64,000 nucleotides of DNA from Orbicella franksi (lineage: Eukaryota). The translations under genes and the position numbers were made by a program. Below the pieces are notes generated by a model. The model did no database searches. It was not told the DNA's origin and worked only from the letters and a program-made list of their open reading frames with translations. This document shows positions 28,184-56,743 of the stretch, piece after piece (the stretch's first letter is position 1; each line of letters begins with the position of its first letter). The DNA lies in the NCBI GenBank assembly GCA_964199315.1, contig OZ116701.1, positions 29,946,001 through 30,010,000 of the forward strand, read 5' to 3'.

Positions 28184-28280
28184 ATGGCGTTCTCCCTCAT
28201 TATTGTTTCTGTAAGCCTAGCATTCACCGTCGCTGTATCACCGAAGGCAACCACAAAATCTGGTGAAACACCGTCCGAAG
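28184..28280 (+). CDS. PKD1-like exon 1: signal peptide
   Basis: ATG at 28184 encodes MAFSLIIVSVSLAFTVAVSPKATTKSGETPSE with a hydrophobic h-region. Phase-1 donor G|GTAGG fits exon 2. Confidence 0.78.
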
Positions 28281-28372
28281 GTAGGCTCTTTAGAAAACCA
28301 ACGGTCTAGTCAGACGTTCAGTCATTAGAGCCGGCGCTTCTCACTTTTAATTCGATGGCGAAACACCTGCAT

Positions 28373-28860
28373 GCGACTATCAAAGAGGAAAGTTTACTCC
28401 ACGTATGTGGCACCGTTTATTATACCGCACAAGGTGGTTGTAACTTTCACATTATTGAATAAAACTCTAGAGTGCAGCCATTGAAAAGAAGCCACTGAGC
28501 AGTACTTACATGCAGTACTCTTTATTAAGGTGGTTCTAACTTGCAAGTCTTGCGGATGAAAACCTAGTGTGCGCCTCAAATGAAAGCTATTGAGCAGTGT
28601 TTTCATACGGTATGTTTATCACGCTGCACAGGGTGGTTCTAACTTTTGTGTCTGTGAATAAAACCCTGATGTGTGATTATTCAAATGAAAGCTGTTGAGC
28701 AGTGCTTTCATGTGGTGCTGTTTATTATACTGTACCAGGTGGTTCTAACTTTTACGTCTGTGAATGAAACCCTGGTGTGATTCACCTGACCATTCAAATG
28801 AAAGCTACAGAGCAGTACTTTCATGTGTTATTGACTATTTTACTGTGCAACGTGGTTCGA
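28373..28860. repeat. Minisatellite, about five units of ~100-105 bp (intron 1)
   Basis: Repeating ttcaaatgaaagct.ttgagcagt.ctttcatgtgg...aaggtggttctaactttt...gtgaatgaaaccct.gtgtgtgacca. Confidence 0.88.
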
Positions 28861-29026
28861 AATTCCCATTTTCTGACTATTAGTCTCTCTGATAGAATCA
28901 AATCCTTACATACTTTGGGCAATAATGACGCTGATTTAACCCAATTTTCCCAATAAAGCTTTATAGAATGCATTTAACTAACAGTAAGGAAAAATAGTAA
29001 TGAATTTGGATGTGCTTGAATTGCAG

Positions 29027-29355
29027 CTAAATGTAACCTGCCTCTTGGGATTTCATCGGGAAAGTTCACCAGGGACATCTTTACGCTCTCGGTGCATAGT
29101 CCAGACACTCATCCCAGCAAGGCAAAACTGAACAGCTCTGGCGGCTACAGGGCTAAAACAGAAGACCCTATCAGGTTCAAGTTTGTGTGGCTAGAATTCG
29201 ACAATGAGACAATAGTAACAGGGATCGCAACCCAAGGATTTGGCGATCCGGAGATCAAAGAGTGGGTCACTGAGTACTCGATCAAATTCACTCGCCAAAA
29301 GAGCGGAGACGAAGAGGCTGAGGATTTCATCTTTGGCAGAGATGGATCGCCTAAG
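29027..29355 (+). CDS. PKD1-like exon 2: F5/8 type C (discoidin) N-half
   Basis: ttgcag acceptor; AKCNLPLGISSGKF...TIVTGIATQG...EWVTEYSIKF; donor AAG|GTAAT. Confidence 0.9.
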
Positions 29356-29841
29356 GTAATTTTTTTGCAATAGCAAAGTGAAGGAATAACACGGCTGAAA
29401 TTCCCAGTTACTGAAATCCTCTCAGAAACAGTATCTTTGATCGGGAATGGACATACGTAGTTTTATAAACAGCACCTTTCAGGAACGTTCAGGAAAACAA
29501 GAAAAGAAACCGGAGACAACATTCCCATCTTGAAAAGTTTAGCCCAAATTTTTCAAGTTCGTAGTTTGTGATCCGTGTTAATCTCCTCCATCCTTAACCA
29601 TCCTTGTTTGTATATGGTTTTCTATTCCCTCGCGAGTGTTTCTCTATCTTACTAAACTATTATCTAATTTAAAGGTAACTTTGTAAGTGGCTAAAATAAC
29701 TCAAAATACTGACTGAGCTCCTTCAAGTGTAAGTGAACAAGAAAAAAGTATTGCTTAATCCCACAAAAATACTACTTTCATAGTAATGACAAATTCGAAT
29801 ATGACAGCGTCTCCTGCGCCAACATACCAGTAGCTCTTTAA

Positions 29842-30219
29842 GGCCCGTCCACGCTACGCCGGAGAAATTTGAAAATTAAACGGCGTTTTCGCTTTGAAAA
29901 CGCATCAAATGTTTTTCGTACACACTACGCCGGATAAATTTTTAAAACGCAAAAATCACCGGTCATTTTGGATTTGTGTTTGAGGAAAATCGGGCAGGGA
30001 AATCAAATGATTATCGTGACGTCATCGGTTTGAAAAAGTTCTGTTTTCAAACTGCTTTCCGTCCACACCAAAGCACAAAGCCGGCGCTTTCAAATTCCTC
30101 CGGTTTGAAGAGCGTTTTCGAAAAGCTCCGTTGTCGAGACGGATTGGTGTGGACGGTCGGTCTAGCCATAGAAATAAAGCTGCCTTTTCAAATTTCTCCG
30201 GCGTGGTGTGGCTGGGGCC
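29842..30219. mobile_element. PIF/Harbinger-type MITE, full length
   Basis: TIRs ggcccgtccacgctacgccggagaaatttgaaaa / ttttcaaatttctccggcgtggtgtggctggggcc; TAA on both flanks. Confidence 0.88.
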
Positions 30220-30264
30220 TAAGTGAAATTCATAACTGTTGCATCTCACGCTTTGAATCTCTAG

Positions 30265-30403
30265 CGGTTTCAAGGGAACACCGACTCGAATACAATTGTC
30301 AGACACAACTTTGAAGCTGAAAACGTGAAGATGGTCTACATAATGCCGCAAGCATACCACAACAACGTCGCCTTCAGATTTGAACTGTATGGATGCACAA
30401 TGA
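30265..30403 (+). CDS. PKD1-like exon 3: F5/8 type C C-half
   Basis: ctag acceptor; RFQGNTDSNTIVRHNF...AFRFELYGCTM matches the F5/8C ending; donor A|GTAAGT. Confidence 0.9.
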
Positions 30404-30494
30404 GTAAGTTGAATTAAACTCAGAGAGTGACCAATGTCGTATTCAATGACAAAACGAGAATAATAGCAAAGCCCTTGACTGGAGTGCGGAGTAA

Positions 30495-30745
30495 AACGGT
30501 TTTCAATTGGGTGTCGTAAAACCAGACCCAAAGTAGTCACTCTGGCCAATCAGAAAGAACACGGAAACTACACTGAACCAATCAAAGCTCGAAGCAAATA
30601 CATGCAGCTGACGCGAAGCGCTGGAAAACCCGTGGAGCAAGTCACGATTGGTTTTGGTTTTACTTCTGATTAATTAACTTAAAGGCGCGAATTTTTTGAG
30701 TCAATCTGTTTACATGTACTTAGTAATGCAGAACCAAACGCTCCA
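30495..30745. mobile_element. Dispersed non-autonomous repeat (second copy ~63110-63332)
   Basis: Both copies share gtcacgattggttttggttttacttctgatt and catg.agctgacg.gaagcgc. Confidence 0.8.
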
Positions 30746-31029
30746 TTTTTATTGATGCACCGCTAAATCCTCTCATAAAAAGAAACCTATGGGCATCAAT
30801 TCCGTGGTCTCAGTTCATCGGGCTCCTTCATAAGGGTTAACCGATCTACTTATAGTTGAGAAATGGGCTGAGATTTTAACTGATGGCTAAGAAATTGTCG
30901 AAAAATCTAACCGATAACCTAGACAGCACATCATCAAGACCCTTTTTCATCGTGCTAGCACACACGAGACAGTGCACGAAAGGTAAAAAAAGGGTTAGAA
31001 CTACTGGAGGAAAAGTGTTAAAACTCTCA

Positions 31030-31325
31030 GAAAGTCAGCAGCCTGAGCGGGAGTAGTCTTCAGTCAAGTCATGTTTAAGTGTTCGTCAGTCGCTGGTGTT
31101 ATAAGTTTGATCACTGAAGCTGATTGGTCAGTGTTGACTCTTAGACTTATCACACCATAGACTGACAAACACTTTCCACTTGACTCTGAAGACTACTTCC
31201 ACTCAGGTTGTCGAAACGTCACCGAGTCACTAACAACAGTTCTCTTCAGAACTACCCTCATCCAGACGCGTGCGATAATTCTATAGGAACTACTGATAAT
31301 CCTAGGTTCAAACCATTTACTATGT
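31030..31325 (+). mobile_element. Penelope-type pLTR with inverted 5' arm and hammerhead relic (intron 3)
   Basis: gactCTGAAGActacttccactcaggttgtcGAAACGTCaccgagtc at 31182-31228; inverted partial copy at ~31036-31070. Confidence 0.75.
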
Positions 31326-31373
31326 TATCTTATGCTTGTTTGTTTGCTTGTTTGTTTGTTTGTTCATCCATAG

Positions 31374-31486
31374 AAAGGTCCGTGGTGTTACACTTCCGGT
31401 GGACAAATCAAAGCTGCACGTTGGATATGCTGATCGACAAAAAATCCGAAGGGTTTAAAAACATTGAAGCGAAACTTGCGAACGAG
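31374..31486 (+). CDS. PKD1-like exon 4: SEA domain N-part
   Basis: (TTTG)n then tag acceptor; KRSVVLHFRWTNQSCTLDMLIDKKSEGFKNIEAKLANE; phase 1 in, phase 0 out. Confidence 0.75.
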
Positions 31487-31838
31487 GTAGAACCGTAGTT
31501 TTTGTCACTCCACCTCTTCGACTATCTTACTATATGCACTTTCTCACAGGGTATTTTGTAATTGCTTATTATTCCAAAGAGCTTAAAGGAGCGCTTCTTC
31601 ACTTAACAAACTATTTGCAGTTCATGATTTCACGTACGTCCTTCACCCTGCTTCACTTGTTCGGCTTGGTACATAGTAGCAGTAGTACCTGATCAGACTA
31701 AAGTTGGTAACTGGCAAAGTAAACATGTCTTAGCAGGCGAACAAATTGCCGGATGAACGAAATAATAAAATGGTTGCTCAGCTACCGCCCAAATGATTGT
31801 TATGAACACAAAAGGAAATAGCCCAATTTCGATATATT

Positions 31839-32129
31839 GGTTGTTTACCATTCACTCGGCAAAAATTCCGGAAATGTTGGTCAGAATGTGAATGGTAAGA
31901 CGATTCTGGCTCGACCGACTGGCAAATTAATTTCCGAAGTATGCGGACTTGAAAGTTAAGGTAGTCCAAAACTTCCAACCGAAATATCCGAATTGAAAAT
32001 ATGCTTCCCACTGGCAATTCTTCACCGCTATCTTGCAATTATGATCAGCTCACTTACCATCGGGAAGTTTTGCTTACCGTTTGCACAACCATTGACGAGC
32101 CGGTTTCTTTGCGTAAATGGTGAAGAACC
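31839..32129. mobile_element. MITE with ~17-bp TIRs and 3-bp ATT duplication
   Basis: ggttgtttaccattcac / gtaaatggtgaagaacc, flanked by att on both sides. Confidence 0.65.
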
Positions 32130-32203
32130 ATTATTTCGTGCCTCAGGCTGAAACCATCTGCTCGTTAAATGCTTTGGTGTTAATATTTTGAAATTTCTTG
32201 CAG

Positions 32204-32259
32204 GCACAACAAATAAGCAAGCTTCCTGGAGTGCAAGTTGTTAAACTTGAGCAACTGAG
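32204..32259 (+). CDS. PKD1-like exon 5: SEA domain middle (56 nt)
   Basis: tttcttgcag acceptor; AQQISKLPGVQVVKLEQLR; phase 0 in, phase 2 out, bridging exons 4 and 6. Confidence 0.72.
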
Positions 32260-32419
32260 GTATTGATCAATAATTTCAAACTGTTTCATTGATTTTTAAA
32301 AGCTTCATGTTGCTGCGCCACGCCGAAGCCCGTTTTGGTGTTGCACAAATCCAAATCAAAGTAAGCATCAAAATACTATGAAAAAAGATGCTTATTATTT
32401 AATATTATTAATGACTCTG

Positions 32420-32720
32420 ACAGCATTCTATCACGAATGCCGTTCTCTTATTGGCTATGCTAACCACTATCTATTAATGCAGACACTGAGAACCCAGCAG
32501 TGTACGGTTGTTAACAAAATGGCGGATGCTTCTTTGCGTTTTCGAAGGCCCTGGTGAAGAGTATTTAGATAAAGTTTTGAAACGCTATTAGATTTATACT
32601 AAAACAATTAAATTATCAGGTCTCCAATTCTAGGCGTGATAGTTGACACGGGGAGCGCCTTCGTCAACAATTACGCGATAGAAATCTCAAGCTCATAATC
32701 TAATGATTTATTCCCTATCA
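32420..32720. mobile_element. Hairpin-bearing dispersed repeat
   Basis: Degenerate long palindrome centred on gttgac-acggggagcgccttc-gtcaac near its right end. Confidence 0.5.
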
Positions 32721-32962
32721 TCATAGGCCTGCAGTGCATGCATAGCTCTTTATTATCTAACTTTCTGCATGCATTGCAGGCCTATAATGATTGAGAATAT
32801 CATTGTTAAAGTTTGAGACCCTACTAGATCGATGAGACCTGTCCGTGCAACCATTCAAGTGAAAGCTACTGAGACTAGTAGACTAGACTAGTACTCTACA
32901 AAATGAAATGATTTGGGAAAATGGAGACAGGAAAGTTCATGTATGCTGTCTCCTCATTTTGT

Positions 32963-33203
32963 GGAGGCAGCGTGGCGCCAGATTGGAAACCCGTAGGTCC
33001 CGGGTTCAAATCCCGTTCTGACTGTTAGCTGATGTTGTTCTCGTTAGCCCCGAGTTTAACTTCTCGGCTACGTTTGTAAATAGCCAACTGGTCTGCCTCT
33101 CGTCAGTTGGGATTCTTAACCTAGCTATGTTTATTTGAATATTTATTTATCATTGTTTGATTACATTGTCCTGAAAAGCCTGAATGGGGAGTGGCCAATC
33201 AAA
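32963..33203 (+). mobile_element. tRNA-derived SINE
   Basis: GGAGGCAGCGTGG head, B-box GGGTTCAAATCCC, body tagccaactgg..tgcct...cagttgggattcttaac; related copy at 52750-52897. Confidence 0.8.
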
Positions 33204-33274
33204 GAATTTTTTTTATGTTTTATGCAAGGTAGGGTAGCATCTCAAGATCCTCATTTGTACCTGTTTTTATTTAG

Positions 33275-33411
33275 ACCTGGAAGTCTGATTGTTGAGTTCA
33301 AAGTTGGAGTGCAAGATTCACAAGCCAAGCTGATGATTGCAAAGGCCAAAAAACTGCTCAAAACCTCCACTAAATTTGACCATAGCTACTTTGCGGCAAA
33401 AGATCCTCAAG
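33275..33411 (+). CDS. PKD1-like exon 6: SEA domain C-part
   Basis: ttttatttag acceptor; (R)PGSLIVEFKVGVQD...KDPQ; donor G|GTTTG. Confidence 0.82.
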
Positions 33412-33907
33412 GTTTGCTTTGTTCACTTCTTCAGTCCCCAAAATAATCTCCAAAACACCATATTCAAATAAATATTCAGATTTGTGTTATTTAACTATTG
33501 TTTCCTAAAAAATGTGAGTAAAATGAGTTCATTAAACAGTATTGGCAGGGGAAGAAATTGTGATCAGATTTGGCCTATGGCACCAGGAAAACAATATAAG
33601 TTTTTGAGCAAGAAGCACAAATATAAAGAAAGGCACTGAGAAAAAATGGTTGGTTAAAATTTTTGGCAGCCCCTTTGCTCCTGCCCAAACTCCAAATCAG
33701 CCTGTGTGATATTTCCTGTAAACAATGGCCAAGTTCTAACCCAATGGAATAAAAGTGACATGTACAGGTAGCCTCCTAAACAGATATGCAATATACTTTA
33801 CTAATGTAATTGCAAATATTAAAAAAAAACAAGTCTTAATTAATCAAATCCAGTTAATGACACTAACATTTGAACTAAGTAAATGGCCTAGATCATTGAG
33901 TCTCTTC

Positions 33908-33996
33908 GTAGCTCAATAGTTAGAGTGCCCTACTGGTATATGAAATGTCATGGGCTCGAATTCCACTGGGGCTGAATTTTTTCTGTCCCACACTCA
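33908..33996 (+). mobile_element. Short degenerate tRNA-derived SINE head
   Basis: A-box-like gtagctcaatagttagag, B-box-like gggctcgaattcc, then T-run. Does not fold as a complete tRNA. Confidence 0.55.
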
Positions 33997-34301
33997 ACAC
34001 ATACAGCACATTTATCCTTTACAGTTGCATTTGTGTTGTCAAGTAATAGTAAAGGAATTTGTTTAAACTGCCTGTCAAATCAACCATTTAGGTCATTTTT
34101 ACAAGTGGTAAATTATAACCAAGGACTCCAGTTAGAGAGAGGGCTTTCATCAAGTTTTGATTCATGCACCATCATGCATGCTCAGCCATAACAGGTGCGA
34201 CAGGTTACAGCCCTTATTGATAGCCCTGAGAGATGTGTCCATGTATTAGACAAGGTTGTTTATAATGGTTTTAAAACTGATTACCTTTCTCTACTCAACA
34301 G

Positions 34302-35094
34302 GCAAATCATGCAAAATACCAAACATTTCATTGGGAAGCCTTTCTCGCAACCCCACGTCTACTCAAACAATCCACCGTTCATCTTCCTACACAGTAAAAG
34401 CAAATATTAGCAGTCAGATTGAAGGAAAGGCCCACATTACATGGAAAATGGCAAAATTACGCAACTCAAACAAGGGAGAATTGGGCAGAAAAAGTACATT
34501 CAAATCTACAAGAATTGCCAAGGAAGATGTTTATCTCATAAATACAACAGTTATACAGAAAGAAATTTTAAATCACACCCTTGAGTATGGTGTCTACTAT
34601 ATAGAATTGATGGCAGTAATGAAAAATGCAATAGATTGTATAAACTACGATTATGGATTTCTGCGAATCAAGGAGTCACCTCTTCAAGCATTCATATCTA
34701 CAGACCCTCCTCTGGATAGTATTCTTAAAGGGTACCACAGAGATCTTCAGCTGGATGCCTCAAGCTCTTTTGACCCAGATGTTCCAAAGGCTAACAAGAG
34801 TGGCATGAGTTATACATGGCTCTGTGCAAGAAAGGGTGAGCGCTTTGGAAACATTGCGTTGCTCCCAATTGTCACGCCACAAGTAGATAGCAAAGATTCG
34901 GATGGGAGAGGCGGGTGTTATGGTACAGGCCCTGGAAAGCTGAAATATACAGGGCCCAATGCAGTGTTGTCCCTGGATCAAATGGAGCCCAAAAGTTATC
35001 TGATCAAACTGATTTTGGGAAAAGACGAGCGAGAGGAAAATGTTTCATTCGAGTTTGAACTGAAATCTTCAAATGGCTTTGTTCTAGACATAAG
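34302..35094 (+). CDS. PKD1-like exon 7: REJ region
   Basis: Inside ORF 34256-35098; LDASSSFDPD...SYTWLC...GGCYGTGPG; donor AG|GTAAGT. Confidence 0.92.
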
Positions 35095-35741
35095 GTAAGT
35101 TTAAGTTGATCACTACATATTTCGCACTTCAATTAGCTGTGTATTCACCAACAGCCTATGTCAATTCGGTTATCTGATGATCATTTTGAGTTATGTCATT
35201 TAAGCCTAAATAGAAAGCAGCCAGCCCCTCCTTGTTTAGCTAGTCAAATGCAAAAGCTCGAGAAACCTTGTAAGAAAACATACGTTAATATCTTAACCTG
35301 TATTGAACTTTTTATGATAATAAGTTCAAATTCGACCTATTAGTACCAGAAAATTTCCCCATTCGGTTAAAAAACACGAACCATGGAAAGAGTTCGATTC
35401 GCTTTAGAGAATGGAAACCTACCTGTTCAGATTTTCGAAACATACTGATGCATCGATTTATAAAATCCTTTTCTAGAATATTACCCTATTGAGCCTACCT
35501 TGTGATGATGCTAGTGAAATAATTGATGATGATACAATTGAAGTAATTATGATTATGCTACTAAAATAACCGGTAGGAAAAGGAAAGTGACAGTGAGATG
35601 TCTAAAATGGCGTTGTTTACGTTAAGTCCGCCATGTTGTGGGTCCCATGTGTAGGCCCCACCCAGCCCTCCCCCAGCCTCCAAACATTGCTCGCTTTGTG
35701 TAAAATACTTAGAGTGTCATCACTCACCTTTTTCCCTACAG

Positions 35742-36321
35742 ATGCAAAAGAAATTGCAAACAGAAAGTAAATCCCTCCGAAAAAATGGTTTTCGAAGGTA
35801 CCTGTAACGGTGAGGCCTGTAAGCAAGTCAAAACAAAATTTCGTTGGTTGCTTTATCGAAAGAGGGATGATGGAACATTCCAGTCAGTCGATATAAGAAA
35901 AAACGAAGACCTGGCTCATCTGGAAATCCATGGAAATGAGTTAGCAGAAGGCGCTTCGTATATACTAGAACTTCACGGAAATTTAACTGAAAAAATCAAA
36001 AGTGCTCAAACTCACAGTTTCATCACAAATGAGTCTCCCAGTGGAGGAAATTGTACCGTTGATAAATCTGAAGGGATAGTTTTGGCGACGAATTTTACAT
36101 TTTCGTGTTCTGGTTGGCTAGACAAAGACAAGGACCTCATTTATCAGTTTGGCTACAAGTCCAGTAGCGGGGCTTATGAAATTCTTCAGCAGAGCTCCAA
36201 GAGATTTTTGAAGACCAATAAACTTCCACTCGGTGACTCGAAAAAGGAAAATATCGTTCAAGTGGACATTTACGTCAAGGATAAATGGGGAGGATTTGGT
36301 GTCCAAAGTGTTGAAGTCAAG
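35742..36321 (+). CDS. PKD1-like exon 8: REJ domain
   Basis: RCKRNCKQKVNPSEK...NESPSGGNCTVDKSEGIVLATNFTFSCSGWLDKDKDLIYQF; donor AAG|GTGAG. Confidence 0.93.
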
Positions 36322-36462
36322 GTGAGCTTGGTTTCTTGTGGCGGCAACCGTTTCAAAGACGTCACGCAAGACCCCTCGTAGGTGTTACGTGACGGCTGTA
36401 CGTCAAGCAATACCTCTCCTAGGTGTTACGTGACGACTGTACAGGAAATCCCAACACGTTGC

Positions 36463-36782
36463 TAGGGTTTTACACATTACGCCGGCATTATCTTGAGCAT
36501 AATATTGAGGCAAAAGAATCGAGAATTATGCCGGAACAAGAGTGATGCCGGGCCTTAGGCGGTTTTTTTTTTCCATCTACTTCAAAAGCCAGTTCGTAAT
36601 AGTCAAGCCAGAGCAATGGAGATTGACAATGAGGCATCGCTCGCGCTTCATGCAATATTATCTGTTTTTATGCGAGAATAATAGAGCATAATAGTGACTC
36701 CTTTTGAGCTTAATAGCGAGACTCTTTGAGCATCGAGCATTACCATAATAGTGGAAAATTTGAGCATAATGTGAAAACCCTA
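36463..36782. mobile_element. hAT-type MITE with 8-bp target-site duplication
   Basis: TIRs tagggttttacacattacgc / gcataatgtgaaaacccta; flanks cacgttgc and caggttgc (7/8 identical). Confidence 0.8.
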
Positions 36783-37146
36783 CAGGTTGCAACGTATTTG
36801 GAACAGGTGGGATCGATAGATAGCGCAAAATATTAGCCAACACCTCAAGCGGCGGAAGGCATGTATCAGATGACAAGGGAATGCATGTAACAGGTGGAAA
36901 CTGCGAGGGAAGGCAAACATGCTATCTGATAGGCTGCTCATCAGGGGCCTTCTCTACAGAAGTCACCGGGACCTCGTCGATCTCTGAAAAGTTTCCAAAT
37001 CCGCCTTTATGTAAATTTTGTTTAATAGCAATATTATTCGTCTCTTGTGTCATGGTGTGTATTTGTCTATTAGATTGCTCAGTGGCTAAAGCAGTTGTGA
37101 TCGCTACGGTTTCTATCGACTTTGGCTGTAAGCTCGGGGTTTCGCT

Positions 37147-37832: not shown

Positions 37833-38018
37833 GTTCTCCCGAGCCACACAATAAACGCGACCACTCTGTACCAATACACGGTGGGAAATGAAAGCGAGAT
37901 TGCCAAGCTGTTAAAAAATAAAGATGGAGGCAAGAACGCCATGCGATTAGCAAACACTTTGTTATCTGTGATGTCTGAAACTTCAGAGGAGGAACTGAAA
38001 ACCGAGGAAAAAATGAAG
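37833..38018 (+). CDS. PKD1-like exon 9: REJ/GAIN helical region
   Basis: tttcttccaaag acceptor; VLPSHTINATTLYQYTVGNESEIAKLLKNKDGGKNAMRLANTLLSVM; phase 0/0. Confidence 0.82.
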
Positions 38019-38707: not shown

Positions 38708-38833
38708 TTCAAGGACGAGATGATCAAACATTCATCAAAGGTTAAAGTTGATGACCTTCAGGGACTGATTCTCGTGACCTCTGTAGTGGCCAGTGCGACT
38801 GATAAAAGCGAAGAGCTCTCAGAAGAATCCCAG
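38708..38833 (+). CDS. PKD1-like exon 10
   Basis: tcttgtttag acceptor; FKDEMIKHSSKVKVDDLQGLILVTSVVASATDKSEELSEESQ; donor CAG|GTAAA. Confidence 0.82.
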
Positions 38834-39085: not shown

Positions 39086-39375
39086 CCGGGGGCGGGGGGC
39101 GACTCCCATACAAAAATGCAAGGCGAGAGTGCTCGTCGGAAATACCTCTAGGAGGTACCAAGATCCTGTTTTGTGAGCGTAGCTTGAAATTGTTTCACCC
39201 CTGAGAGGCACCAATTCTAAATCAACACTTAAACTGACGCCGACTTTCTTCGGCTCAGTACCCTAAACGATACCACAAAAGCTGCCGCCGTGGAACTTTT
39301 GAGGCTAAACACCCTAAAGAGATAAAACTGCTTTTAACTCCTAAAAGGTACGACGGTGTGGGAGTTCTCATCGGG
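39086..39375 (+). mobile_element. MITE (ccggggg...gactccc termini), intron 10 copy
   Basis: Internal gaggtaccaagatcctgttttgtg..cgt.gcttgaaa...ttcacccct.agagg is shared, inverted, with 42808-43100. Confidence 0.82.
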
Positions 39376-39606
39376 ATGCGAGAAGGAATCCGTATGCACT
39401 TGTCTAGTGTTCTGAAAAAGTTTCAGGTTCTTTCTTAACCCAACAATTCACTCGGTCCAGTCAACCATTCCCTGAAAGGACGGGTAGTTTGATTATCCAC
39501 CGAAAAATCTGAACTAGCATCAACATAGCACTTGGCAATCAGTAGGGAGAATTAATTGTTTAACCATGAAACTGAACAGATACTTGTATGAATTCCCCTT
39601 CCACAG

Positions 39607-39828
39607 TGGACCTCCGTCGACGTTCTGGAAAACATGGCAAACAAGTTTCAAAACCTCACCGACAAGACAAGCGAAAAAGATCCAAATGGTATGAAAAAGG
39701 CGGGAAATAATTTACTACTTGGAATTGGGAATGTGCTCGATGCGTCTTTTGCAAAACCTGAGACTCCAGAACTGGGTAAAACTGAGCAAGAGAAAACGGT
39801 GGAAGAAGAAAAAGTTAACGTGACAAAG
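39607..39828 (+). CDS. PKD1-like exon 11
   Basis: ccttccacag acceptor; WTSVDVLENMANKF...AGNNLLLGIGNVLDAS; phase 0/0. Confidence 0.85.
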
Positions 39829-40316
39829 GTTTGTAGCTTTTGTTAGTATTCTTTCATTTTTTAGATAGATATGAATAAAGGGTTTATTTGCTAAGATGCG
39901 TTTCAATAGGGCGTAGAGGATTCAAATTCACCGTACAGGGCCAGTTTTCACCGACACCGGCAAAATCAATCTTGTGGGAATGAAAAATGAACACAGCAGG
40001 ACCGTCAATGAGCTAAGCATCATTTCATGTTATTTAACTGTCCTAAGAGATTCAATTACCGCGACAGCGCGTGCAGACGCAGATAACAATGGCCCAGTAT
40101 TAGTCTAGGTCTGCTCACGTGTTCATTTATTTTGCATTGTTCTTGTTTCTTTTTGTTTGGTAATTTTACAGTTATGCCATCTTTACAAAAAATAGATCTT
40201 TTAGAAGGCTTCTCTGGGGGCAAAATTGACATACAATAAAGTAGCCGGTAGCTACTGACCAATCCGAGCGCCCAGAGCCTCTTAACATAGTTGGTGTTTG
40301 TTTTTGAATTCAACAG

Positions 40317-40565
40317 ACAAAAGTCCTGGCCCAAAAAGCATGGACCCTGATCAGCAAGGTCGGGGACAGCATGTTATCGTCGCAAGAGGTTGGTGACGAG
40401 CCTCTTGAAATGGAGACCAAGGCAATATCCATGAGGTTAGACAGACAGCTTCCAAGTGCAATCAGCGACAAACCCGCCAAAATAAATGGCAGCAAAGTGA
40501 CATTCCCACCCCCTGAGAAGTTGTTGGGCTCAAAGGCAATGGGCATGGCGCACGTGGACACACAG
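40317..40565 (+). CDS. PKD1-like exon 12: GAIN region
   Basis: TKVLAQKAWTLISKVGDSMLSSQEVGDEPLEMETKAISMRLDR...VDTQ; donor CAG|GTAGC. Confidence 0.87.
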
Positions 40566-40704
40566 GTAGCAATAAGACAGTAGTAATTTGTGAAGTATGA
40601 TCGTCTGAGTAAGGTTGTCCTGAAATTATGTCTGTCGCTGGTTCGTACAACATTCCTTTCAGTACCACTGTCGAACAGAATGTTTAGGGAAGATGAAAAC
40701 GTAA

Positions 40705-40809
40705 AGACGGACAGACAGACAGACAGACAGACTGACTGACTGACAGACACACAGACAGACAGTAAGACAGACAGACAGACAAACAGACTGAGGGAGTGAC
40801 TGGCTGACT

Positions 40810-40841
<32 letters not shown>

Positions 40842-40868
40842 AAAACTGATAGATGGACAAACAGACAA
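40705..40868. repeat. Compound (GACA)n/(GACT)n microsatellite (intron 12)
   Basis: Direct reading; it explains the spurious VCLS-repeat ORFs. Confidence 0.95.
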
Positions 40869-41169
40869 CGTGACAATATTTTTACTCGGGGTCAGAGGAG
40901 TCATCTGTTACGTGACGTAAAGAGGATGCAATCTCAACCTTAAATTTAGGAATTGTAAACGTGTGTAAGTCTCGTTAAGAAAAAGGTTTAAGAAAAAAGA
41001 AACAATGCAAAGCCGAATTAAATGTGAGAAGCTGCAGCGAGTCTGCTTTAAACAGTATTCAATGATTAGCTTCGTTCAGGATCGATGAGGTGAGCAAAGA
41101 CTCTGGGAACGATTTTATAATTGTTGAACCACAAAGCCGCAATGTACTAAGAGATTTAATATTTCCTAG

Positions 41170-41937
41170 ATGCTTTCTATGAAACATAACCCCTTCTCGT
41201 GGGACAAAAGCGCCAGTCGTGTGAAGTCAGCCGTAATCAGCATTGACTTGAAGGACGAGAAAGGAGAGCTATTAGACGTGTCGGGTCTGTCTCAAGAGAT
41301 CGAGCTTAACATCAAATCCGACCGACCACAGGACGACCAAAGTCCCGTGAGCTCGTTCGTAAAACCGAGTATCAATGGCAGCATGACATATCACCGAGTA
41401 GTGATTTCCTCAGACGAAATGACGCTAAGCGTGAAAATTGTTCCGTCCAATGGAACAAGGCAACAAGTATACTTTCGCCATCTTAAGCGGCCAACGATTG
41501 AGACCTACGATTTCATGGCTGAAGTCCCGGATTTTTCGTCTTGCAAAAAGCGCGCGAAAAAATTTGAAGATGCTTCGCACACCGCAATGTATGATGGATA
41601 CTTCAACTGCACCAAGGATCCACATTTGTTAACGCTTTCTAGTGACGTCACGGGCCATATTGGCTTGCATTATATCGGAATTCGATTGCCTGGCTCGAGC
41701 AAGGATTCCGGGAAAAAGACACGAAGACGAAGATCCTGCTCAGAAAACGGAAGACAGAAAAGGTCTGAAATATGCGTGGAATTTAAGGATCCCCCAACCA
41801 CCCCTCCCCCAACACCAAGGATGGATATCCCTGTTTTTGATCCCAGCACTGATGTGAACTACACTTTGTCCATCTCCATGGGAGCCTGTTTGTATTGGTC
41901 AGAGAGTAAAGAGAAATGGACATCTGAGGGTTGTAGG
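41170..41937 (+). CDS. PKD1-like exon 13: GAIN domain and first half of GPS
   Basis: MLSMKHNPFSWD...CLYWSESKEKWTSEGCR; donor AGG|GTAAGT. Confidence 0.93.
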
Positions 41938-42082
41938 GTAAGTGACCTTATCGTTGGGACTACGCTTTGTGGTTGGTTGGAAAAATACTACTACCATCTG
42001 GTTTAACAAATAAGAGCAACCACGTTGTTTTCTTAGCCAATCAGATGCCAAAACTTACTTTGCGTTGTTTTCTTGATTTAAG

Positions 42083-42319
42083 GTTGGCCCAGATTCAGCC
42101 AATGGCTCTATCCAGTGCCTCTGCACCCATCTCTCCGCGTTTGGAGGCGACTTCTTAGTCGCTCCGAATCCCATCGACTTTGATCAAGTGTGGGACGCCT
42201 TCAGTAACATCTTGGAGACCAAGAACTTTGTGGTCCTTGCCACTGTGTGTGCGATGCTCGGTTTATACATAATCGCGGTGGTTTTTGCTCGAAGAGCGGA
42301 CAGAAGTGACAAGCAAAAG
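42083..42319 (+). CDS. PKD1-like exon 14: GPS cleavage site and TM1
   Basis: VGPDSANGSIQCLCTHLSAFGGDFLVAPNPIDF...FVVLATVCAMLGLYIIAVVFARRADRSDKQK. Confidence 0.93.
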
Positions 42320-42807
42320 GTTAGTAATTATTATTATTAGTGGTAGTAATTTTAGGATAAACGAGTCTGTTGGGTTCCGACCTAGGAGTGGATGGCACGG
42401 TGAGCTAACGTCTAGAGAAGAGGTGACAATTCTCTTAAGAAAATCAGAGGGGATTAAAGGCCTTCCGAACAGATAATTTACCGAACGGGCATGCCGATCC
42501 ACGATATCAACTGACTTTTTCGATCCCTGACTTGGGATTGAGAGGACGAAGCCTTTGATCTGTTGGCGATCCAAAAATAGCGCTGTGTATGTTGATGACT
42601 GCAATTCAATCGATGAAGCTTTGACTCCTCTACATACGCCCAAAATTTCAAGTCGAAGTGAAATCACCTTTACTGCCGACTTATCCTAACATCTCTTTAA
42701 GCCGGTCCAAGAATAATTACAATGTGATGTTTATCAACTTGAAGGTGGTAAAGGTAAATTAATCGCTGTGACGAATTTGGGCAAAGCCTAAGTCGAATCT
42801 ATATTCA

Positions 42808-43100
42808 TGGGGGGACATGGGTGCTCATCATACCTTTTAGGAGTTAAAAACGCGGTTTTGGTACATCTTAATGCGTTTAGCCTCAAAAGGTCCACAGCAG
42901 AGGCTTTCGCGGTACCTTTTAGGGTATTGAGCCGAAAAAATATGACAGGAGATAATGTCTTGTTTTAGAATCGGCACCTCTTAGGGGTGAAAAACATTTC
43001 AAGCCACGCCCACAAAACAGGATCTTGGTACCTCTTAGGGGGTTCTTTTCAAACTTTCCTACGAGCACCCATGTTCTTTTTATATGGGAGTTCCCCCGGG
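42808..43100 (-). mobile_element. MITE of the same family as 39086-39375, opposite orientation, intron 14
   Basis: Reverse-complement similarity across ~250 bp; terminus tatatgggagttcccccggg. Confidence 0.82.
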
Positions 43101-43304
43101 CCTATGTTTCGCGTGTTCGCCCTTCGTCGGGGCAAGATCAACCAATGCCAAAGAACTATCACCCTTGCGTTGAGGTCGACTGACGTTGTAGGGTGGAATA
43201 AGACCAAGTGAAAGTTCGTAGTTGAGGGAAGAGAGGCTTTTCTTAAATGAAACTTAAGTCAATAATTAACTTCGATATTAATTCATTGTGTTATTAAATT
43301 TTAG

Positions 43305-44408
43305 GTGACACAAGTGATTCCGTTGGGAGATGCGAACACCAGTAACCATTGCTACGAGCTGTCGATCTACACTGGCTTGTGGCGACGATGCGGTACGTCG
43401 GCTAATGTCGCCATAGTGATTTACGGAGATGATCGAGACACTGACGTCATTCCTCTGAACTGCAGCACCATGTGCAACAAGAAGCTCTTTGCTCGAGGAA
43501 GCGTCAACACCTTCATTTTGTCGCTAAAGGAGTCGTTGGGCGACCTATCGCACATCAAAATCTGGCATGACAATTCTGGCGACAACCCCCAATGGTTCAT
43601 CAGCAAAATCGTCATACGGGATCCCAAGACCGACACCACGTGGTACTTTGTGTGCAACCGCTGGCTGGCAGCCGAGAGGGAGGATGGTAAGATCGAGCGC
43701 GTCCTATATGTGTCGTCACACGCAGAAATCAACAGTTTTAGAAACAAGTTTTACAGCAGAGCGTCCACGGGGCTTGGTGACGGGCATATCTGGCTTTCAG
43801 TGGTTACTAGACCTCCAACGAGTCCGTTCACGCGCGTCCAACGTGTGTCGTGTTGCTTGTCCGTATTGATGTCAGTAATGGTCACTAACGCGATGTTTTA
43901 TCAATTCGGTGCCGAGGACACCAGTGGCTCTTTTCAGCTCGGTCCTCTGGTGCTGAGCTGGCAACAGATCATTATCGGTATGCAAAGTGCTGTGCTAGTG
44001 GTTCCGGTAAACGTGTTGATCGTGTTCATATTCCGTAACAGCAGATCCAAACGCGAGGTCACGCAAGCTTATAACACAAACAGTGACAGCCTCACGCAAG
44101 AGCAAGAAGTGTCACGCAAATCAGGCTACGTTCTGCCTCGGTTCTTTGTGTATGTTGGCTGGGCTCTGTGTATTTTGACCTCGCTGACTTCAGCTGCCTT
44201 CACCGTTTTCTACAGCATGATGTGGGGCACTGAAGTGTCCAATAAATGGCTCACCTCCATTCTGGTCTCCTTCACTCAAGACGTGTTATTTATTCAGCCA
44301 ATCAAAGTGGTAATCGTGGCTTCACTGTTAGCGTTTATCATCAAAAAGGCGCCAGAGGATGACAGTGTTAAAGGCCAACTCAAGTCTGTGGCGCATTCTA
44401 AAGTAAAG
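43305..44408 (+). CDS. PKD1-like exon 15: PLAT/LH2 domain and TM2-5
   Basis: YELSIYTG...GTSANV...LFARGSVNTF...IKIWHDNSGDNPQWF...WYFVCNRWLA; donor AAG|GTAAGT. Confidence 0.95.
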
Positions 44409-45149
44409 GTAAGTAAGAGTCATTGCACTGTTTTTTTCCTGTACTTCAGACGCCCCCGGAATGGGTATTTTGAGCTCAAGAATCACTCCGTTTAATGCGC
44501 GACATACCGTTTCTCAATAGTTTCGAAAGCCCTCAAATGTTTCTCGCTTAAGTTTGACGCGTCGTCGCAGCTGATTTCCGTTTTGTAAACGGTCGATGCC
44601 ATCATTGGTAACCAAGCCTTTCAGAATGGACGATGCCATATCTGCTTTAGTTTAGGCCTGGACAAGATAGAAACTGGTTATAATTTGTTGATAGAGCAAA
44701 ACGCACTCGGTTTGCCTGCGGTTAGCTTTTATTTGATGGTTGGGGCAACTCTATCATTAATATTTAAGAAAGTCACGTTTTATTAAATTTTGTGGAGATT
44801 TGGCGGTACAACCAGGTAGTGTAGTGATGTAAGAGGAATGTTAGGAAAAAGGTTCCAGGTTCGATACTGTGTGGTTACTTACAAATTTTTTTTTCTTTAA
44901 TTTAGTAGAGAAAAATTCGTTGACAGTTGAAAAAATTTCTAAGTGTCACGAAAACGGCATCGACCGTTTACGAAACGGACAACTACGTCGTCGCAGCACT
45001 TATTGTTTCCCGCCATGACACGCCGCATTTGTCACAGGTTGCAAACGTTTCCAGCCAAAATCTTTCTCGTATCTTACTGATTCTTCCCTGTATTCACTCT
45101 CGTCTGAAGCGTACAACAGCTTTGTTACGTTGCTTTTTATATATGTTAG

Positions 45150-45365
45150 GGTGAATCTCACAAGCCACTCAAACCAGACAAACAACAACTGGAGCGTTTT
45201 AGAGAGTATCGCTTGAGAGTCCTGATCATGGCACGAATACTCGTCGAGCTCGCATTCTACCTTCTCTTTGCCTGGGCACTAATGGTTATATGCTACGGCA
45301 GGAGAGATACCGGGCACTACTGGATGACAAATGGCATTGACGAACTGTTGCCCAAATTTCACAAG
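45150..45365 (+). CDS. PKD1-like exon 16: channel S1
   Basis: GESHKPLKPDKQQLERFREYRLRVLIMARILVELAFYLLFAWALMVICYGRRD; phase 0/0. Confidence 0.9.
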
Positions 45366-45464
45366 GTAACAGTGTAAAATTGGAAATTTCCACATCACTA
45401 GTTCCACAGAAAAGTGGCCAGAAGCCTGGGTATTTAAACCTATTGAAGAAGCTCCTATTAGTAT

Positions 45465-45575
45465 TTTCTTACTTATTTTTTCCTTACCTAACTACCTACC
45501 TACCTAACAACCTACAAACCTACAAACCTACTCACTTGCTTACCAATCTAACTCCCTGCTTACTTACTAAGTTAA
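45465..45575. repeat. Degenerate (CCTA/CTTA)n tetranucleotide tract (intron 16)
   Basis: cttacctaactacctacctacctaacaacctacaaacctac... Confidence 0.75.
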
Positions 45576-45651
45576 TGAGTCAGTCAATTGATAGATTGGC
45601 GAGCTGGTACAAGAAATCTAGAACAACTTCTTACTAGCTATTTTCTATCAG

Positions 45652-45823
45652 ATTCACAACGCTGATACATTCTGGGCCTGGACAAAGAGATACCTGGTTC
45701 CTGCCATGTATGAAGTTAAGTGGTACAATGGACAAGCATTTGAGTATAAAGATGGATTCATATCGGACTTGTCGGGCTACCTGGTCGGCATGCCTCGCCT
45801 CAGACAACTCAGAGTTAAAGCAG
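45652..45823 (+). CDS. PKD1-like exon 17: TOP/polycystin domain
   Basis: IHNADTFWAWTKRYLVPAMY...YLVGMPRLRQLRVKA (GxPRLRQLRV motif). Confidence 0.92.
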
Positions 45824-46007
45824 GTGAAAATAATTGACTTAAATAAGCCATAAAACACACCGTAGATGACATAACGTCAAAAACGTTTGACTCCTACTTT
45901 TTTACTCTTTTAAATATGTCCTTTAAGCCTTGTAAAAATTAGTTGTTTACGTTCTTGTTCTGGAATTCCTCTCTTTCGTGTAATTTTCATTCATTTTTTT
46001 TCTCCAG

Positions 46008-47872
46008 GTCCATGCCCAATTGCACCTCGATTTCCTGAGTTTAGAACAACATTGCGCCCCTGCCTTCCGCCTTACAGCATGACTGACGAAGACCAGACAC
46101 GCTATAGCATGCCGAAATGGCGCCAAATTCCAGCCAACGAAACGGCGCTATTGTCAGAATTCGCGCTGCGCGAGATGTGCCCGAGACCTTGGCGTTATAA
46201 GAAGTCGGACGAGCTTCACAACCTTCCTCAACAGGGCTTGAGGGGGCTCTATGGCGGAGGAGGCTTCGTGGCTGATCTAGGCTACACAAAGTCATCAGCA
46301 TTAAGGGTCATACACAACCTGCAGAACAACTCCTGGATTGACGAGAGAACGCGGGCCGTGTTTGTCGAGTTTATGATTTTTGACTCGTCGACAGATCTCT
46401 TTAGCGCTGCATCGTACATCTTTGAGGCTCTGCCCCTGGGCGGGGCTACCACATTCAAGAGAATCAACACGATGTCATTGTACGGAGCCAGGTCAACTGG
46501 GACGCGTTCTATAAGCGCGGTTTGCGAGCTGATAGTCCTACTAATGGTCTTCTACTTCATTGTAGCCGAAGCAATTAAAATCTGGAAGGAAAAGTGTAAA
46601 TACTTCAAGTCTGCGTGGGCCTATGTGGAAATGGCGCAAATTCTAGCGGCAACAGCCACAGTCGTGTTATCGATCTTTCGAAGGTATCACACAACAAAGC
46701 TAGTGAACAGAATTCACAAAAACCCCTTTGAAACATCAAGCTTTCACTACGCAGTGCTGTGGTCAGATCTTGAAAACGCGCTTATGGCCATTCTGGTGTT
46801 TATTTTAACCGTAAAAGTCCTTAAGATCCTCAAGTTCAACGAACACATTTCTAGCTTAGCAGCAAGCATGGCACGTTGCCGAACAAAAATCATCTCTTAC
46901 TCGGCGGTTTTCATGGTGGCATTCTTGGCTTTCATGCAGATTGCGCTTCTCGTCTTCGGAAGCACCACGAAGGCGTACTCGAGCGTCTCCGAAGTCTTCC
47001 GAACACAGTTCGGAATGTTCATCGGGGGAGATACGAACTATCACGAGCTTAAGGACGCCAATCGGATTATTGGACCCATCTACTTCCTTCTGTTTATGAC
47101 AACCATGGCATGCATATTAATAAATATGTTTCTGGCCATCTTGAACGAGTCTTACAGAGAGGTGAGAATTTATCCAGATCGTGACACAGAGGAGTACAAA
47201 ATGTTGGAAGTGTTTGTCGATTACGCCAAGAATGCAATGGGTAAAAGGCTAGACTCGTGGAGAAACGCCAAATTCTTTCCTAAGAGAAACAGCTACAGCG
47301 TTGAGACTCAACAAGAAAAATCCAAAACAGAACTTGAAGAAACCCACAAGTACACAGCAGTGTCGTGGAGTACCTACGATTTAATCTGCCAGAAACATCT
47401 GGACAACAACGACGCAGCTATCGAGACGTCGTTTTTCAAAGACATTCGAAGGCACTTAAGAAATATCAGCAACGAACTGAGGGAAATTTCTGTCGTGCAT
47501 CGCTCGGGGAAATACAAAGTCCACGATGTGCAGAAGAATTTTGAAAACGAGGCAGAAAGAGCCTGCACCGACTTACGGACACCTTGTAAAGGACTCGGCT
47601 TGGAGAAAATCTCCAGCAAATGTAGTTTATTTAGTTTGAGCGAAAGCACGATGTACCTAGACAGACGGAAGGGCCGAGATTCCATCAGAAGGTTGCTCAA
47701 CAACGATGACAACTCAGACGAGGAAGATGGCGATTGGGATGACCAGACATCTTATGCGGAGTCCATGGGAACTTTTTTCGGGAACTCTCGATCTGGGAAC
47801 GTTTATGACCCAGAAAGAGAACCTTTCAATGAGTCAGACGATTGGTCTTTGGATCGAGAAAGCTATATCTAG
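46008..47872 (+). CDS. PKD1-like exon 18: TOP, S2-S6, pore and C-tail
   Basis: ttttctccag acceptor; YGGGGFVADLG...WIDERTRAVFVEF...ILINMFLAILNESY; TAG at 47870-47872. Confidence 0.95.
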
Positions 47873-51169: not shown

Positions 51170-51194
51170 TCATATACATTTCCAAACGAAGACG
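51170..51194 (-). CDS. EML6: EML5/6 terminal coding exon
   Basis: ctcttgcag acceptor; (C)VFVWKCI* with TGA at 51172-51170 (EML6 ends VFVWRCL). Confidence 0.88.

Positions 51195-56377: not shown

Positions 56378-56743
<366 letters not shown>

Follow-up and report, generated by a model that had tools for sequence, protein, structure and literature searches.

Introduction

Polycystin-1 (PKD1) ectodomains, as described for human, sea urchin, and Nematostella, contain neither F5/8C (discoidin) nor SEA domains (PMC1934368, PMC8846589). In the described members of the PKD1L2/REJ type, the modules found before REJ are C-type lectin, SUEL, EGF, PKD repeats, WSC, LRR, or LDL-A (PMC1934368, PMC8846589). 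Nematostella polycystin-1 carries WSC and PKD repeats (PMC8846589) and is required for the gentle-touch response of type II hair cells (PMC11811123). In Acropora skeletal proteomes, a PKD1-related 11-TM protein has been found and has been proposed to be released by cleavage (PMC3748352, PMC4890752). The published coral skeletal protein also contains WSC and PKD repeats (PMC4890752). Among adhesion GPCRs, ADGRF5 has a SEA domain in its N-terminal fragment, upstream of the GAIN/GPS autoproteolytic domain (PMC13604961).

Here we analyzed a window of Orbicella franksi DNA (the whole stretch examined, 64,000 nucleotides of contig OZ116701.1) that contains a gene of 18 exons at 28184-47872 on the + strand. 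The encoded protein of 2462 aa consists of a signal peptide, F5/8C, SEA, REJ, GAIN/GPS, TM1, PLAT, TM2-6, the polycystin (TOP) domain, and the PKD channel, in this order. Our main reading, with a probability of roughly 0.75, is that this coral gene encodes a functional, expressed, 11-pass receptor-channel of the PKD1-like family (PKD1L2 / receptor-for-egg-jelly type), and that exon shuffling remodelled the ectodomain in the coral subfamily to which it belongs.

Results

Gene structure and transcripts

The open frame of 2462 codons is intact from the ATG at 28184 to the stop codon at 47870-47872, and AG/GT borders were present at all exons. Exon 1 (28184..28280, phase 1 out) supplies the start codon, which is the first ATG after an in-frame stop, and a signal-peptide-like N-terminus (aa 1-19; Kyte-Doolittle peak 2.23). 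An exon 72% identical to it lies upstream of exon 2 in the ortholog L001. The hydropathy profile of the spliced protein, which is not a topology prediction, gave 11 hydrophobic spans in addition to the signal peptide.

Exons 2-3-4-5-6-7 were joined in frame within one 1460-nt RNA contig (run X20, record 14). The joints between exons 5, 6, and 7 were common to runs X15, X19, and X20, representing three studies, and in all three the exon 5/6 joint was located at 32257>33273 (GT..AG, cut +2). For exon 7, 77-81% of the sampled words were present in RNA runs of six studies. The RNA junction evidence spans exons 2-7; for the exon 1-2 junction and those past exon 7, the model relies on homology, canonical splice sites, and the conservation of individual exons in other corals. 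The initial annotation had made its reading depend on the splicing of exons 2-6 to exon 7 in transcripts, and this splicing was found. The F5/8C and SEA cassettes both begin and end in phase 1, so that the symmetric borders noted earlier are borne out by the exon model.

The polycystin body and its family

The region from REJ to the C-terminus was assigned exon by exon. REJ is encoded by exon 7 (34302..35094; PF02010 positions 35-190, E 4.7e-18; RNA contigs in three runs) and exon 8 (35742..36321; PF02010 positions 210-407, E 2e-27; conserved in L001-L005), both over the cut-off. Exons 9-12 (37833-38018, 38708-38833, 39607-39828, and 40317-40565) matched zero Pfam models; this REJ-to-GPS region aligns continuously with full-length PKD1L2-like proteins and is collinear in five corals, and we infer that it forms the helical part of the GAIN domain. 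The GAIN beta part and the first half of GPS lie in exon 13 (41170..41937; PF01825 positions 3-21; 70-85% identity in five corals), and exon 14 (42083..42319; 86-96% identity in five corals) carries the second half of GPS (PF01825 positions 28-42), the stalk, and TM1 (42227-42283), the latter features being placed by motif and hydropathy. The two GPS halves scored 14.7 + 13.5 bits, to be compared jointly with a cut-off of 22.5 bits. Their motif, C-x-C-T-H-L-S, is located 31 residues before TM1, and its His1281-Leu-Ser1283 (42128-42136) is a canonical, predicted cleavage site.

Exon 15 (43305..44408) encodes PLAT (about 43353-43706) in the first cytoplasmic loop, followed by TM2-TM5 as placed by hydropathy. 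PLAT was detected with PF01477 (E 3.7e-20) and by a match of the exon to solved polycystin-1 in PDB (E 5.6e-44). TM6 is in exon 16 (45150..45365; hydropathy peak aa 1742-1760; conserved in L002 and L003). The TOP domain, located between hydropathy peaks 6 and 7, starts in exon 17 (45652..45823; PF20519 positions 7-55, E 5e-6) and continues in exon 18 (46008..47872; PF20519 E 7.1e-23), which also encodes TM7-TM11 with the pore region (PKD_channel, about 46508-47164; PF08016 E 1.4e-49) and an acidic C-terminal tail. Against PDB, the channel exon scored ~193 bits with polycystin-2 and PKD2L1, 95 bits with PKD1L3, and 64 bits with polycystin-1. The coral gene thus combines the features that define the PKD1 family, namely REJ, GAIN/GPS beside TM1, PLAT, eleven TM spans with TOP, and a C-terminal channel module, here PKD2-like and of six helices.

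The nearest named full-length relatives were annotated as "polycystin-1-like protein 2" (in hemichordates, echinoderms, molluscs, and Nematostella) and also as "receptor for egg jelly-like". The PKD1L2, PKDREJ, and sea-urchin REJ3-type proteins share the order REJ, GAIN/GPS (His-Leu-Ser/Thr), TM1, PLAT, TM2-5, TOP, and PKD channel with the coral gene, and a sea-anemone gene matches its exon structure from REJ through to the final exon. By contrast, the coral gene differs from PKD1L2/REJ-type members before REJ, where it has F5/8C and SEA instead and no PKD repeat. F5/8C and SEA were not found in nine scanned full-length PKD1-like relatives from other animals, and we found no description of a discoidin-SEA layout for the polycystin-1 family. 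The architecture is a new layout within the PKD1L2/REJ-type family and is common to the corals compared.

Proteins of the ADGRF group (ADGRF5/GPR116 and ADGRF1) resemble the coral gene in having SEA before GAIN/GPS, so that a single ectodomain has two sites of potential self-cleavage. However, they are 7-TM proteins without REJ, PLAT, TOP, or a channel. Outside the domain types in common they have no sequence relationship to the coral gene, and the likeness concerns layout rather than family. We rejected an adhesion GPCR identity for the coral gene, in which TM1, PLAT, and a polycystin body of 10 helices come after GAIN, with no seven-helix secretin-like domain.

The discoidin and SEA modules

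The F5/8C domain is split over two exons. Exon 2 (29027..29355; phase 1 in, 0 out) carries the first two thirds from the conserved Cys, and exon 3 (30265..30403; phase 0 in, 1 out; 71-85% identity in five other corals) carries the final third up to the closing Cys; both exons are covered by RNA. Scored singly, exon 2 matched PF00754 at positions 9-72 (E 5e-4, 20.5 bits) and exon 3 at positions 86-127 (E 0.14, 12.7 bits), each below the 28.2-bit cut-off; the two matches are collinear, and their separate exon scores add up to 33 bits. Exon 2 alone matched the factor V/VIII C domains, retinoschisin, and neuropilin in PDB (best E 1e-10), and the paired Cys at the domain ends (residues 35 and 186) were both kept in six corals. 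These Pfam parts and PDB matches support the F5/8C domain of the initial annotation.

The SEA module (103 aa, residues 189-291) is encoded by exon 4 (31374..31486; phase 1 in, 0 out; first strand and first helix), exon 5 (32204..32259, 56 nt; phase 0 in, 2 out; strand toward the cleavage turn), and exon 6 (33275..33411; phase 2 in, 1 out), all placed by RNA, exon 6 through its joints with both neighbouring exons in three runs. Exon 6 opens with R-P-G-S-L-I-V-E. Within it, Gly-Ser (Gly247/Ser248) is located at 33279-33284, and P-G-S-L-I is invariant in six corals. Situated at the turn between strands 2 and 3, this Gly-Ser is a putative SEA cleavage motif.

An unrelated linker with a chance Gly-Ser turn, in place of a true SEA domain, would agree with the silence of the databases. 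Searched exon by exon, exons 4 and 6 gave no match to Pfam SEA (PF01390) at E up to 10; a genome-wide six-frame search with PF01390 returned nothing at this locus; and neither single SEA exons nor exon profiles matched PDB. A reference profile was made from 11 SEA domains of this genome that Pfam verifies (L007-L017). Against it, the spliced module scored 23.0 bits, the top score among 2000 shuffles being 7.7 bits, and the modules of six corals scored 14-19 bits over noise of at most 3.9 bits. In hhalign, the probability was 91.5% (E 8.5e-7), whereas none of 20 column-shuffled controls exceeded 1.3%. This match to a self-built profile is confined to the central 55 columns, but it runs in register over helix 1, strand 2, Gly-Ser, and strand 3, and the Gly-Ser of exon 6 aligns to the G-S-V of the verified domains. 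Moreover, modules of the paralogs scored on the generic SEA profile and have an identical three-exon split. We consider the linker explanation unlikely. The mucin-type SEA domains of this genome (L007-L017) share with the coral module the core from helix 1 to strand 3 and the Gly-Ser turn; they differ in being single-exon and over the Pfam cut-off, whereas the coral module is divided among three exons, which have diverged too far for Pfam to recognize them singly. The earlier claim of a three-exon SEA domain stands on the same-genome profile, the hhalign match, and the RNA-placed exons, and it lacks a match to the Pfam SEA HMM in the exon-by-exon search. Taken together, ORF, Pfam, PDB, profile, and RNA data support F5/8C, a three-exon SEA, and REJ-GAIN on a PKD1-family 11-TM body.

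Relation to the skeletal matrix protein

A role at the calcifying surface had also been put forward in the initial annotation, with reference to the PKD1-related protein of coral skeletons. On this view, the protein would be released into the organic matrix of the skeleton once cut at GPS or SEA, in keeping with the 11-TM protein of the Acropora proteomes and with the two potential shedding sites of the coral protein. The coral skeletal protein and Nematostella polycystin-1 are, like the coral gene, cnidarian proteins with REJ, GPS, PLAT, and 11 TM. However, none of the exons matched PF01822 or PF00801 (WSC and PKD repeats), and the coral gene falls in a separate, tandemly expanded clade from the classical PKD1 type. 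Because the skeletal protein has WSC and PKD repeats (PMC4890752), it is a different paralog of the classical PKD1 type; we rejected its identity with the coral gene, and the calcification idea gains no support. We regard this explanation as distinctly improbable.

Conservation in other corals

Exons 2-8 were present in five other coral assemblies with the same sizes and intact frames (exons 3-6: 139, 113, 56, and 137 nt), and exons 9-17 were collinear in other coral assemblies. The dS values to the one-to-one orthologs in the five corals ranged from 0.2 to over 1. The dN/dS values were 0.03-0.68 across exons, all below 1, with PLAT/TM at the low end (0.08-0.13) and exons 1-3 and 7 the highest (0.46-0.68 vs L001); with values below 1, there was no sign of positive selection. 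Between the gene and the RNA contigs, 13 of the 16 listed differences alter the amino acid, and exon 2 had an excess of amino-acid-changing differences between individuals in a small sample.

The fast ectodomain and these amino acid changes, together with the 61 PKD1-like loci of the genome, some with internal stops, could also be read as signs of a decaying or redundant copy without its own function in a large tandem family. This is very unlikely, given the unbroken 2462-codon frame, the intact one-to-one orthologs in five corals with dN/dS below 1 in every exon, and the transcription and correct splicing seen in several studies. Lastly, although the model was first drawn from raw sequence and its RNA joints are confined to exons 2-7, an artefact in which the discoidin and SEA exons come from a separate upstream secreted-protein gene is hardly conceivable, in view of the single in-frame contig through exons 2-7, the 5-6-7 joints in two further runs, the compatible intron phases, and the same exon chain ahead of REJ in five other corals and ten paralogs.

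Tandem expansion and possible function

A two-exon F5/8C ahead of REJ was found in at least 11 genes of this genome (the coral gene, A-H, C4_29.73, and C4_29.79). In the tree, 12 rows were labelled as F5/8C-bearing (eight paralogs, the coral gene, and three of its orthologs), and 11 of them fell in one clade (SH-aLRT 93). C4_29.73 and C4_29.79, unlabelled rows in this clade, also carry F5/8C. The coral gene thus belongs to a coral subfamily that has expanded in tandem and whose most variable part is the discoidin exon. The gene itself is not singular, given the F5/8C genes counted here and those of five other corals.

The function of the coral gene, including an adhesion or mechanosensory role, we can only infer. 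The discoidin head may bind an extracellular ligand, for example a glycan, lipid, or matrix component. If the protein is cut at SEA and GPS without falling apart, a non-covalently held chain would result, and a pull or ligand on the head would be passed through the GAIN stalk to the membrane core. The core would then gate or modulate a cation pore, probably with PKD2-like subunits. The solved PKD1-PKD2 and PKD1L3-PKD2L1 complexes have a 1:3 stoichiometry, and the proposed pairing of the coral protein is modelled on them. A variable discoidin exon and tandem multiplication would fit a sensor set with diversified ligand specificity. More broadly, stony corals may have evolved and massively amplified private polycystin-like sensors in which SEA and GAIN act as two successive self-cleaving joints beneath an exchangeable discoidin head, the tandem array serving as a repertoire of receptors that are gated by force or ligand and have diversified in specificity; we hold this wider idea to be tentative and rather doubtful. 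If true, the discoidin exon, as a variation hot spot, would determine what each copy recognizes, be it a glycan, lipid, microbe, gamete, or matrix.

The SEA region also varied among the copies. Of the ten further copies, six had a SEA-like match for the first exon at E 0.04 or better, namely A, B, C, D, E, and C4_29.73. All three SEA parts in order were found, among the ten, in paralogs A and D only, whose modules lack Gly-Ser. In one paralog, four EGF exons are inserted between F5/8C and SEA, which, together with the phase-1 cassettes, upholds the earlier view of a modular, exon-shuffled ectodomain.

Gene structure and transcripts

Clear coding blocks in stop-free plus-strand frames lie at 28-48 kb of the window. 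The exon chain was built by linking these frames via AG/GT sites with matching phases and was then corrected with RNA contigs. The final model comprises 18 plus-strand exons with 7389 coding bases, encodes 2462 residues and ends at a stop codon at 47870-47872. AG/GT chaining placed exon 1 (28184-28280), and chaining together with RNA placed exon 2 (29027-29355; RNA from 29178), exon 3 (30265-30403), exon 4 (31374-31486), exon 6 (33275-33411), and exon 7 (34302-35094; REJ). Exon 5 (32204-32259) was placed by RNA contigs. The remaining exons were placed by chaining: exon 8 (35742-36321; REJ), exon 9 (37833-38018), exon 10 (38708-38833), exon 11 (39607-39828), exon 12 (40317-40565), exons 13 and 14 (41170-41937 and 42083-42319; the two parts of the GPS), exon 15 (43305-44408; PLAT), exon 16 (45150-45365), exon 17 (45652-45823; Polycystin_dom), and exon 18 (46008-47872; Polycystin_dom and PKD_channel). 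Within intron 12, a simple ACAG-type repeat at 40700-40940 gives T-D-R-Q runs on translation in two frames.

Six studies of coral holobionts contributed RNA runs whose Logan contigs contain exon 7, with 77-81% of the sampled words present, and DNA runs labelled coral contain it too. For splicing, four RNA runs were placed on 29000-34999, so the check covers exons 2 to 7. A 1460-nt, intron-free contig of RNA run X20 passes from exon 2 (from 29178) through exons 3, 4, 5, and 6 into exon 7, and the GT..AG joints 32257>33273 and 33409>34300 were detected in runs X15, X19, and X20, which represent three studies. The joining of exons 2-6 to exon 7, as proposed in the initial annotation, is thus observed in the X20 contig and, for the 5-6-7 joints, in three studies. 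The proposed three-exon SEA module was likewise borne out, with the RNA contigs fixing its middle exon at 32204-32259; a 13-nt microexon (31621-31633) considered for this position was dropped. Both the F5/8C and the SEA cassettes are entered and left in phase 1, as had been claimed for their bounding introns. An exact scan of metagenome contigs gave no match to the exon 5/6 junction, and the exon 7 homolog search returned genomic single-exon ORFs only, with no longer transcript-derived product.

Compared with RNA contigs of other individuals or species, the window differed at 13 of 176 bases in exon 2 (29178-29353) and at 4 of 141 in exon 3 (30263-30403). For the same contigs, there were 0 differences in 300 bases of exons 4-6 and 4 in 700 bases of exon 7. 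Nine of the 10 differences listed for the discoidin exons change an amino acid. These differences could reflect a variation hot spot or gene conversion among paralogs. Five intronic stretches (29400-30200, 30400-30800, 31200-31400, 32400-32800, and 33000-33200) had summed RNA-contig depths of thousands to tens of thousands with many partial joints; they are high-copy interspersed repeats abundant in coral transcriptomes.

The discoidin and SEA modules

PF00754 matched exon 2 over profile positions 9-72 and exon 3 over positions 86-127. The parts follow each other collinearly, and their scores add up to 33 bits, the cut-off being 28.2. Among PDB entries, exon 2 alone matched the factor V and VIII C domains, retinoschisin, CASPR2, and neuropilin, and the domain has the usual Cys pair at its start and end. 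Taken exon by exon, these sequence matches establish the assignment of exons 2-3 to a predicted F5/8C domain.

Against Pfam SEA and PDB, matches were at chance level both for single SEA exons and for profiles of exons 4 and 6 from six species. A profile was therefore built from 11 Pfam-verified single-exon SEA domains of this genome. It matched the spliced N-termini of this gene and its five orthologs in all six cases, at 14-19 bits and in the expected place, whereas 150 polycystin proteins scored at most 3.9 bits with the exception of P0092. The isolated SEA module scored 23.0 bits, compared with 7.7 for the best of 2000 shuffles. In hhalign, module and profile aligned at 91.5% (E 8.5e-7), with 20 column shuffles reaching at most 1.3%; the aligned core comprises helix 1, strand 2, the Gly-Ser, and strand 3. 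That exons 4-6 encode a putative SEA domain is well supported by this self-built profile. Of the two domains named in the initial annotation, F5/8C was thus recovered by PF00754 in its exon parts; for SEA, single exons had no Pfam match, and the spliced module was recovered with the same-genome profile and hhalign. The exceptional P0092, an abalone "polycystin family receptor for egg jelly-like" protein, scored 22 bits on the coral SEA profile at residues 163-250, between calcium-binding EGF domains, and this segment had no Pfam SEA report at E <=0.001. From P0092, SEA may occur in other REJ-type proteins.

The receptor-channel core

Pfam, applied to single exons, identified REJ (exons 7 and 8), GPS across exons 13/14, PLAT (exon 15), Polycystin_dom (exons 17 and 18), and PKD_channel (exon 18). 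From hydropathy, the protein has a signal-peptide-like N-terminus and eleven predicted membrane spans; the TOP domain (Polycystin_dom) lies between spans 6 and 7. The GPS motif reads C-x-C-T-H-L-S and lies 31 residues ahead of TM1. Among solved structures, the PLAT-TM2-5 exon matched polycystin-1 (E 5.6e-44), and the last exon matched polycystin-2/PKD2L1 at ~193 bits, far above PKD1L3 (95 bits) and polycystin-1 (64 bits), which fits a complete pore module. The full-length relatives that have names, from hemichordates, echinoderms, molluscs, and Nematostella, are annotated automatically as "polycystin-1-like protein 2" or "receptor for egg jelly-like".

Conservation among corals

Other coral assemblies contain single-exon ORFs that match exon 7 with 49-87% identity. 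Five long coral contigs were examined, and all five contain exons 2-8 in order with intact frames, and exons 3-6 are exactly 139, 113, 56, and 137 nt in each. Collinearity continues through exons 9-15 in each locus as far as its sequence reaches, and one or two loci also show exons 16-17. The P-G-S-L-I at the SEA turn is invariant across the corals compared. In the coral comparison, dN/dS was 0.08-0.13 in PLAT/TM and 0.15-0.25 in SEA and GAIN; for the closest pair, it was 0.46-0.68 in exons 1-3 and 7. Exon-wise dN/dS across the five coral orthologs gave no sign of positive selection, being <1 in every exon. These results indicate that the gene is under purifying selection, with the head evolving faster.

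A discoidin-bearing family in the genome

The PLAT-TM exon matched 61 separate loci in the 497-Mb genome at E <=4e-53, most of them in tandem arrays. Arrays of PKD1-like PLAT-TM loci lie on C4 at 8.2-8.9 Mb, 29.73-29.99 Mb, and 30.81-30.86 Mb, on C5 at 1.8-2.6 Mb and 12.7-13.1 Mb, and on C6 at 18.66-18.77 Mb. Some loci are near-identical (four C6 copies at 36-kb spacing), and a few contain internal stops.

The best in-genome matches of exon 2 adjoin PLAT-TM loci. Eight such loci were fetched, and all eight have a pair of exon-2-like and exon-3-like F5/8C exons ahead of REJ exons. Two more neighbour genes also carry F5/8C ahead of REJ, bringing the total to at least 11 genes; this gene is a family member and not a singleton. 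In several paralogs, SEA-like exons with the identical three-part split lie between F5/8C and REJ, scoring up to 18.7 bits on the generic SEA profile; in paralogs A and D, the SEA-like module lacks the Gly-Ser. Paralog E (locus L035, G000:C4:30850000-30859999, minus strand) has four calcium-binding-EGF-like exons between the discoidin and SEA-like exons, so the subfamily also exists as discoidin-EGFx4-SEA-REJ. The ectodomain had been proposed to be exon-shuffled, and these four inserted exons are direct evidence of cassette shuffling.

The PLAT-TM exon tree had 12 rows labelled as F5/8C-bearing (eight paralogs, this gene, and three of its orthologs), and 11 of them fell in one clade (SH-aLRT 93). 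Two unlabelled rows of this clade, C4_29.73 and C4_29.79, proved to carry F5/8C too. A second clade includes the array at 8.2-8.9 Mb together with a protein from a sea anemone. One gene of that array has a discoidin C-terminal exon, and the discoidin head may thus predate the first clade.

Distribution beyond stony corals

In nine full-length relatives found in other animals, REJ is preceded by PKD repeats, EGF, WSC, Fz, C-type lectin, or LDL-A, and F5/8C is absent from all nine. Residues 1-300 had no match among 150 representative proteins. With the last exon as query, the representative library yielded, besides full-length relatives that were distant, only fragments of last exons, the best at 49-50% identity. 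When a full-length brittle-star protein and coral REJ exons were used together as the query, four matches came back and no annotated coral ortholog was among them, an absence that is uninformative. The gene of P0173, an N-terminally partial protein of the sea anemone Actinostola, has the same exon structure as this gene from REJ to the end. Upstream of P0173, ahead of the REJ exons, contig L039:3900-7900 contains three tandem repeats of ~1.5 kb, each encoding a weak SEA-like first part and a G-G-V-V-I-F strand. No F5/8C was found within the 8.6 kb upstream of P0173, where the contig ends.

The PKD1 proteins of humans and sea urchins are built with C-type lectin, SUEL, EGF, PKD, WSC, LRR, and LDL-A modules (PMC1934368), and Nematostella polycystin-1, which is required for gentle touch, has WSC, PKD, and REJ (PMC8846589, PMC11811123). 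In ADGRF5, SEA precedes GAIN (PMC13604961). In the literature searched, coral tandem-duplication papers included, no description was found of discoidin/FA58C joined to polycystin/PKD1L2. A coral genome comparison mentions diversified polycystins only in passing (PMC6208414); for coral biology, the present data supply a concrete architecture and map positions for them. The suggested link to a PKD1-related skeletal protein gained no support, as that protein is a different paralog of the WSC/PKD-repeat type, and the F5/8C clade is now set apart from this paralog found in skeletons.

Proposed mechanism

Of the components of polycystin receptor-channel complexes, the polycystin-1-type proteins are the least understood, notably in what their large ectodomains sense. 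This protein has a short, simple ectodomain, with one discoidin and one SEA followed by REJ-GAIN, and an intact PKD2-like pore module. It is thus a compact system for studying how ligand binding or pulling at the head is passed to the GAIN stalk and channel. The analysis established the order of the domains, two cleavage motifs, and a channel module that bears a pore, and showed that the gene is expressed, conserved, and part of an expanded family. Beyond these observations, we propose that the discoidin head would capture a ligand. Double autoproteolysis would produce a non-covalent, force-sensitive chain, through which the signal could pass on to the stalk and channel core, and the protein may assemble with PKD2-like subunits.

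Surroundings in the window

The ORFs at 50871-51263 (plus strand) and 63026-63400 (minus strand) had no Pfam match. In 1-28000, no long open frame was found except 21138-21564, which itself had no Pfam match; AT skew is positive throughout this part. On the minus strand at ~56300-60300 lie exons of EML (echinoderm microtubule-associated protein-like) genes, with 58942-60295 encoding the end of a second beta-propeller; after it come a HELP motif and a first propeller at 57724-56378. Such an order suggests that two EML-like genes stand in tandem downstream of the polycystin gene.
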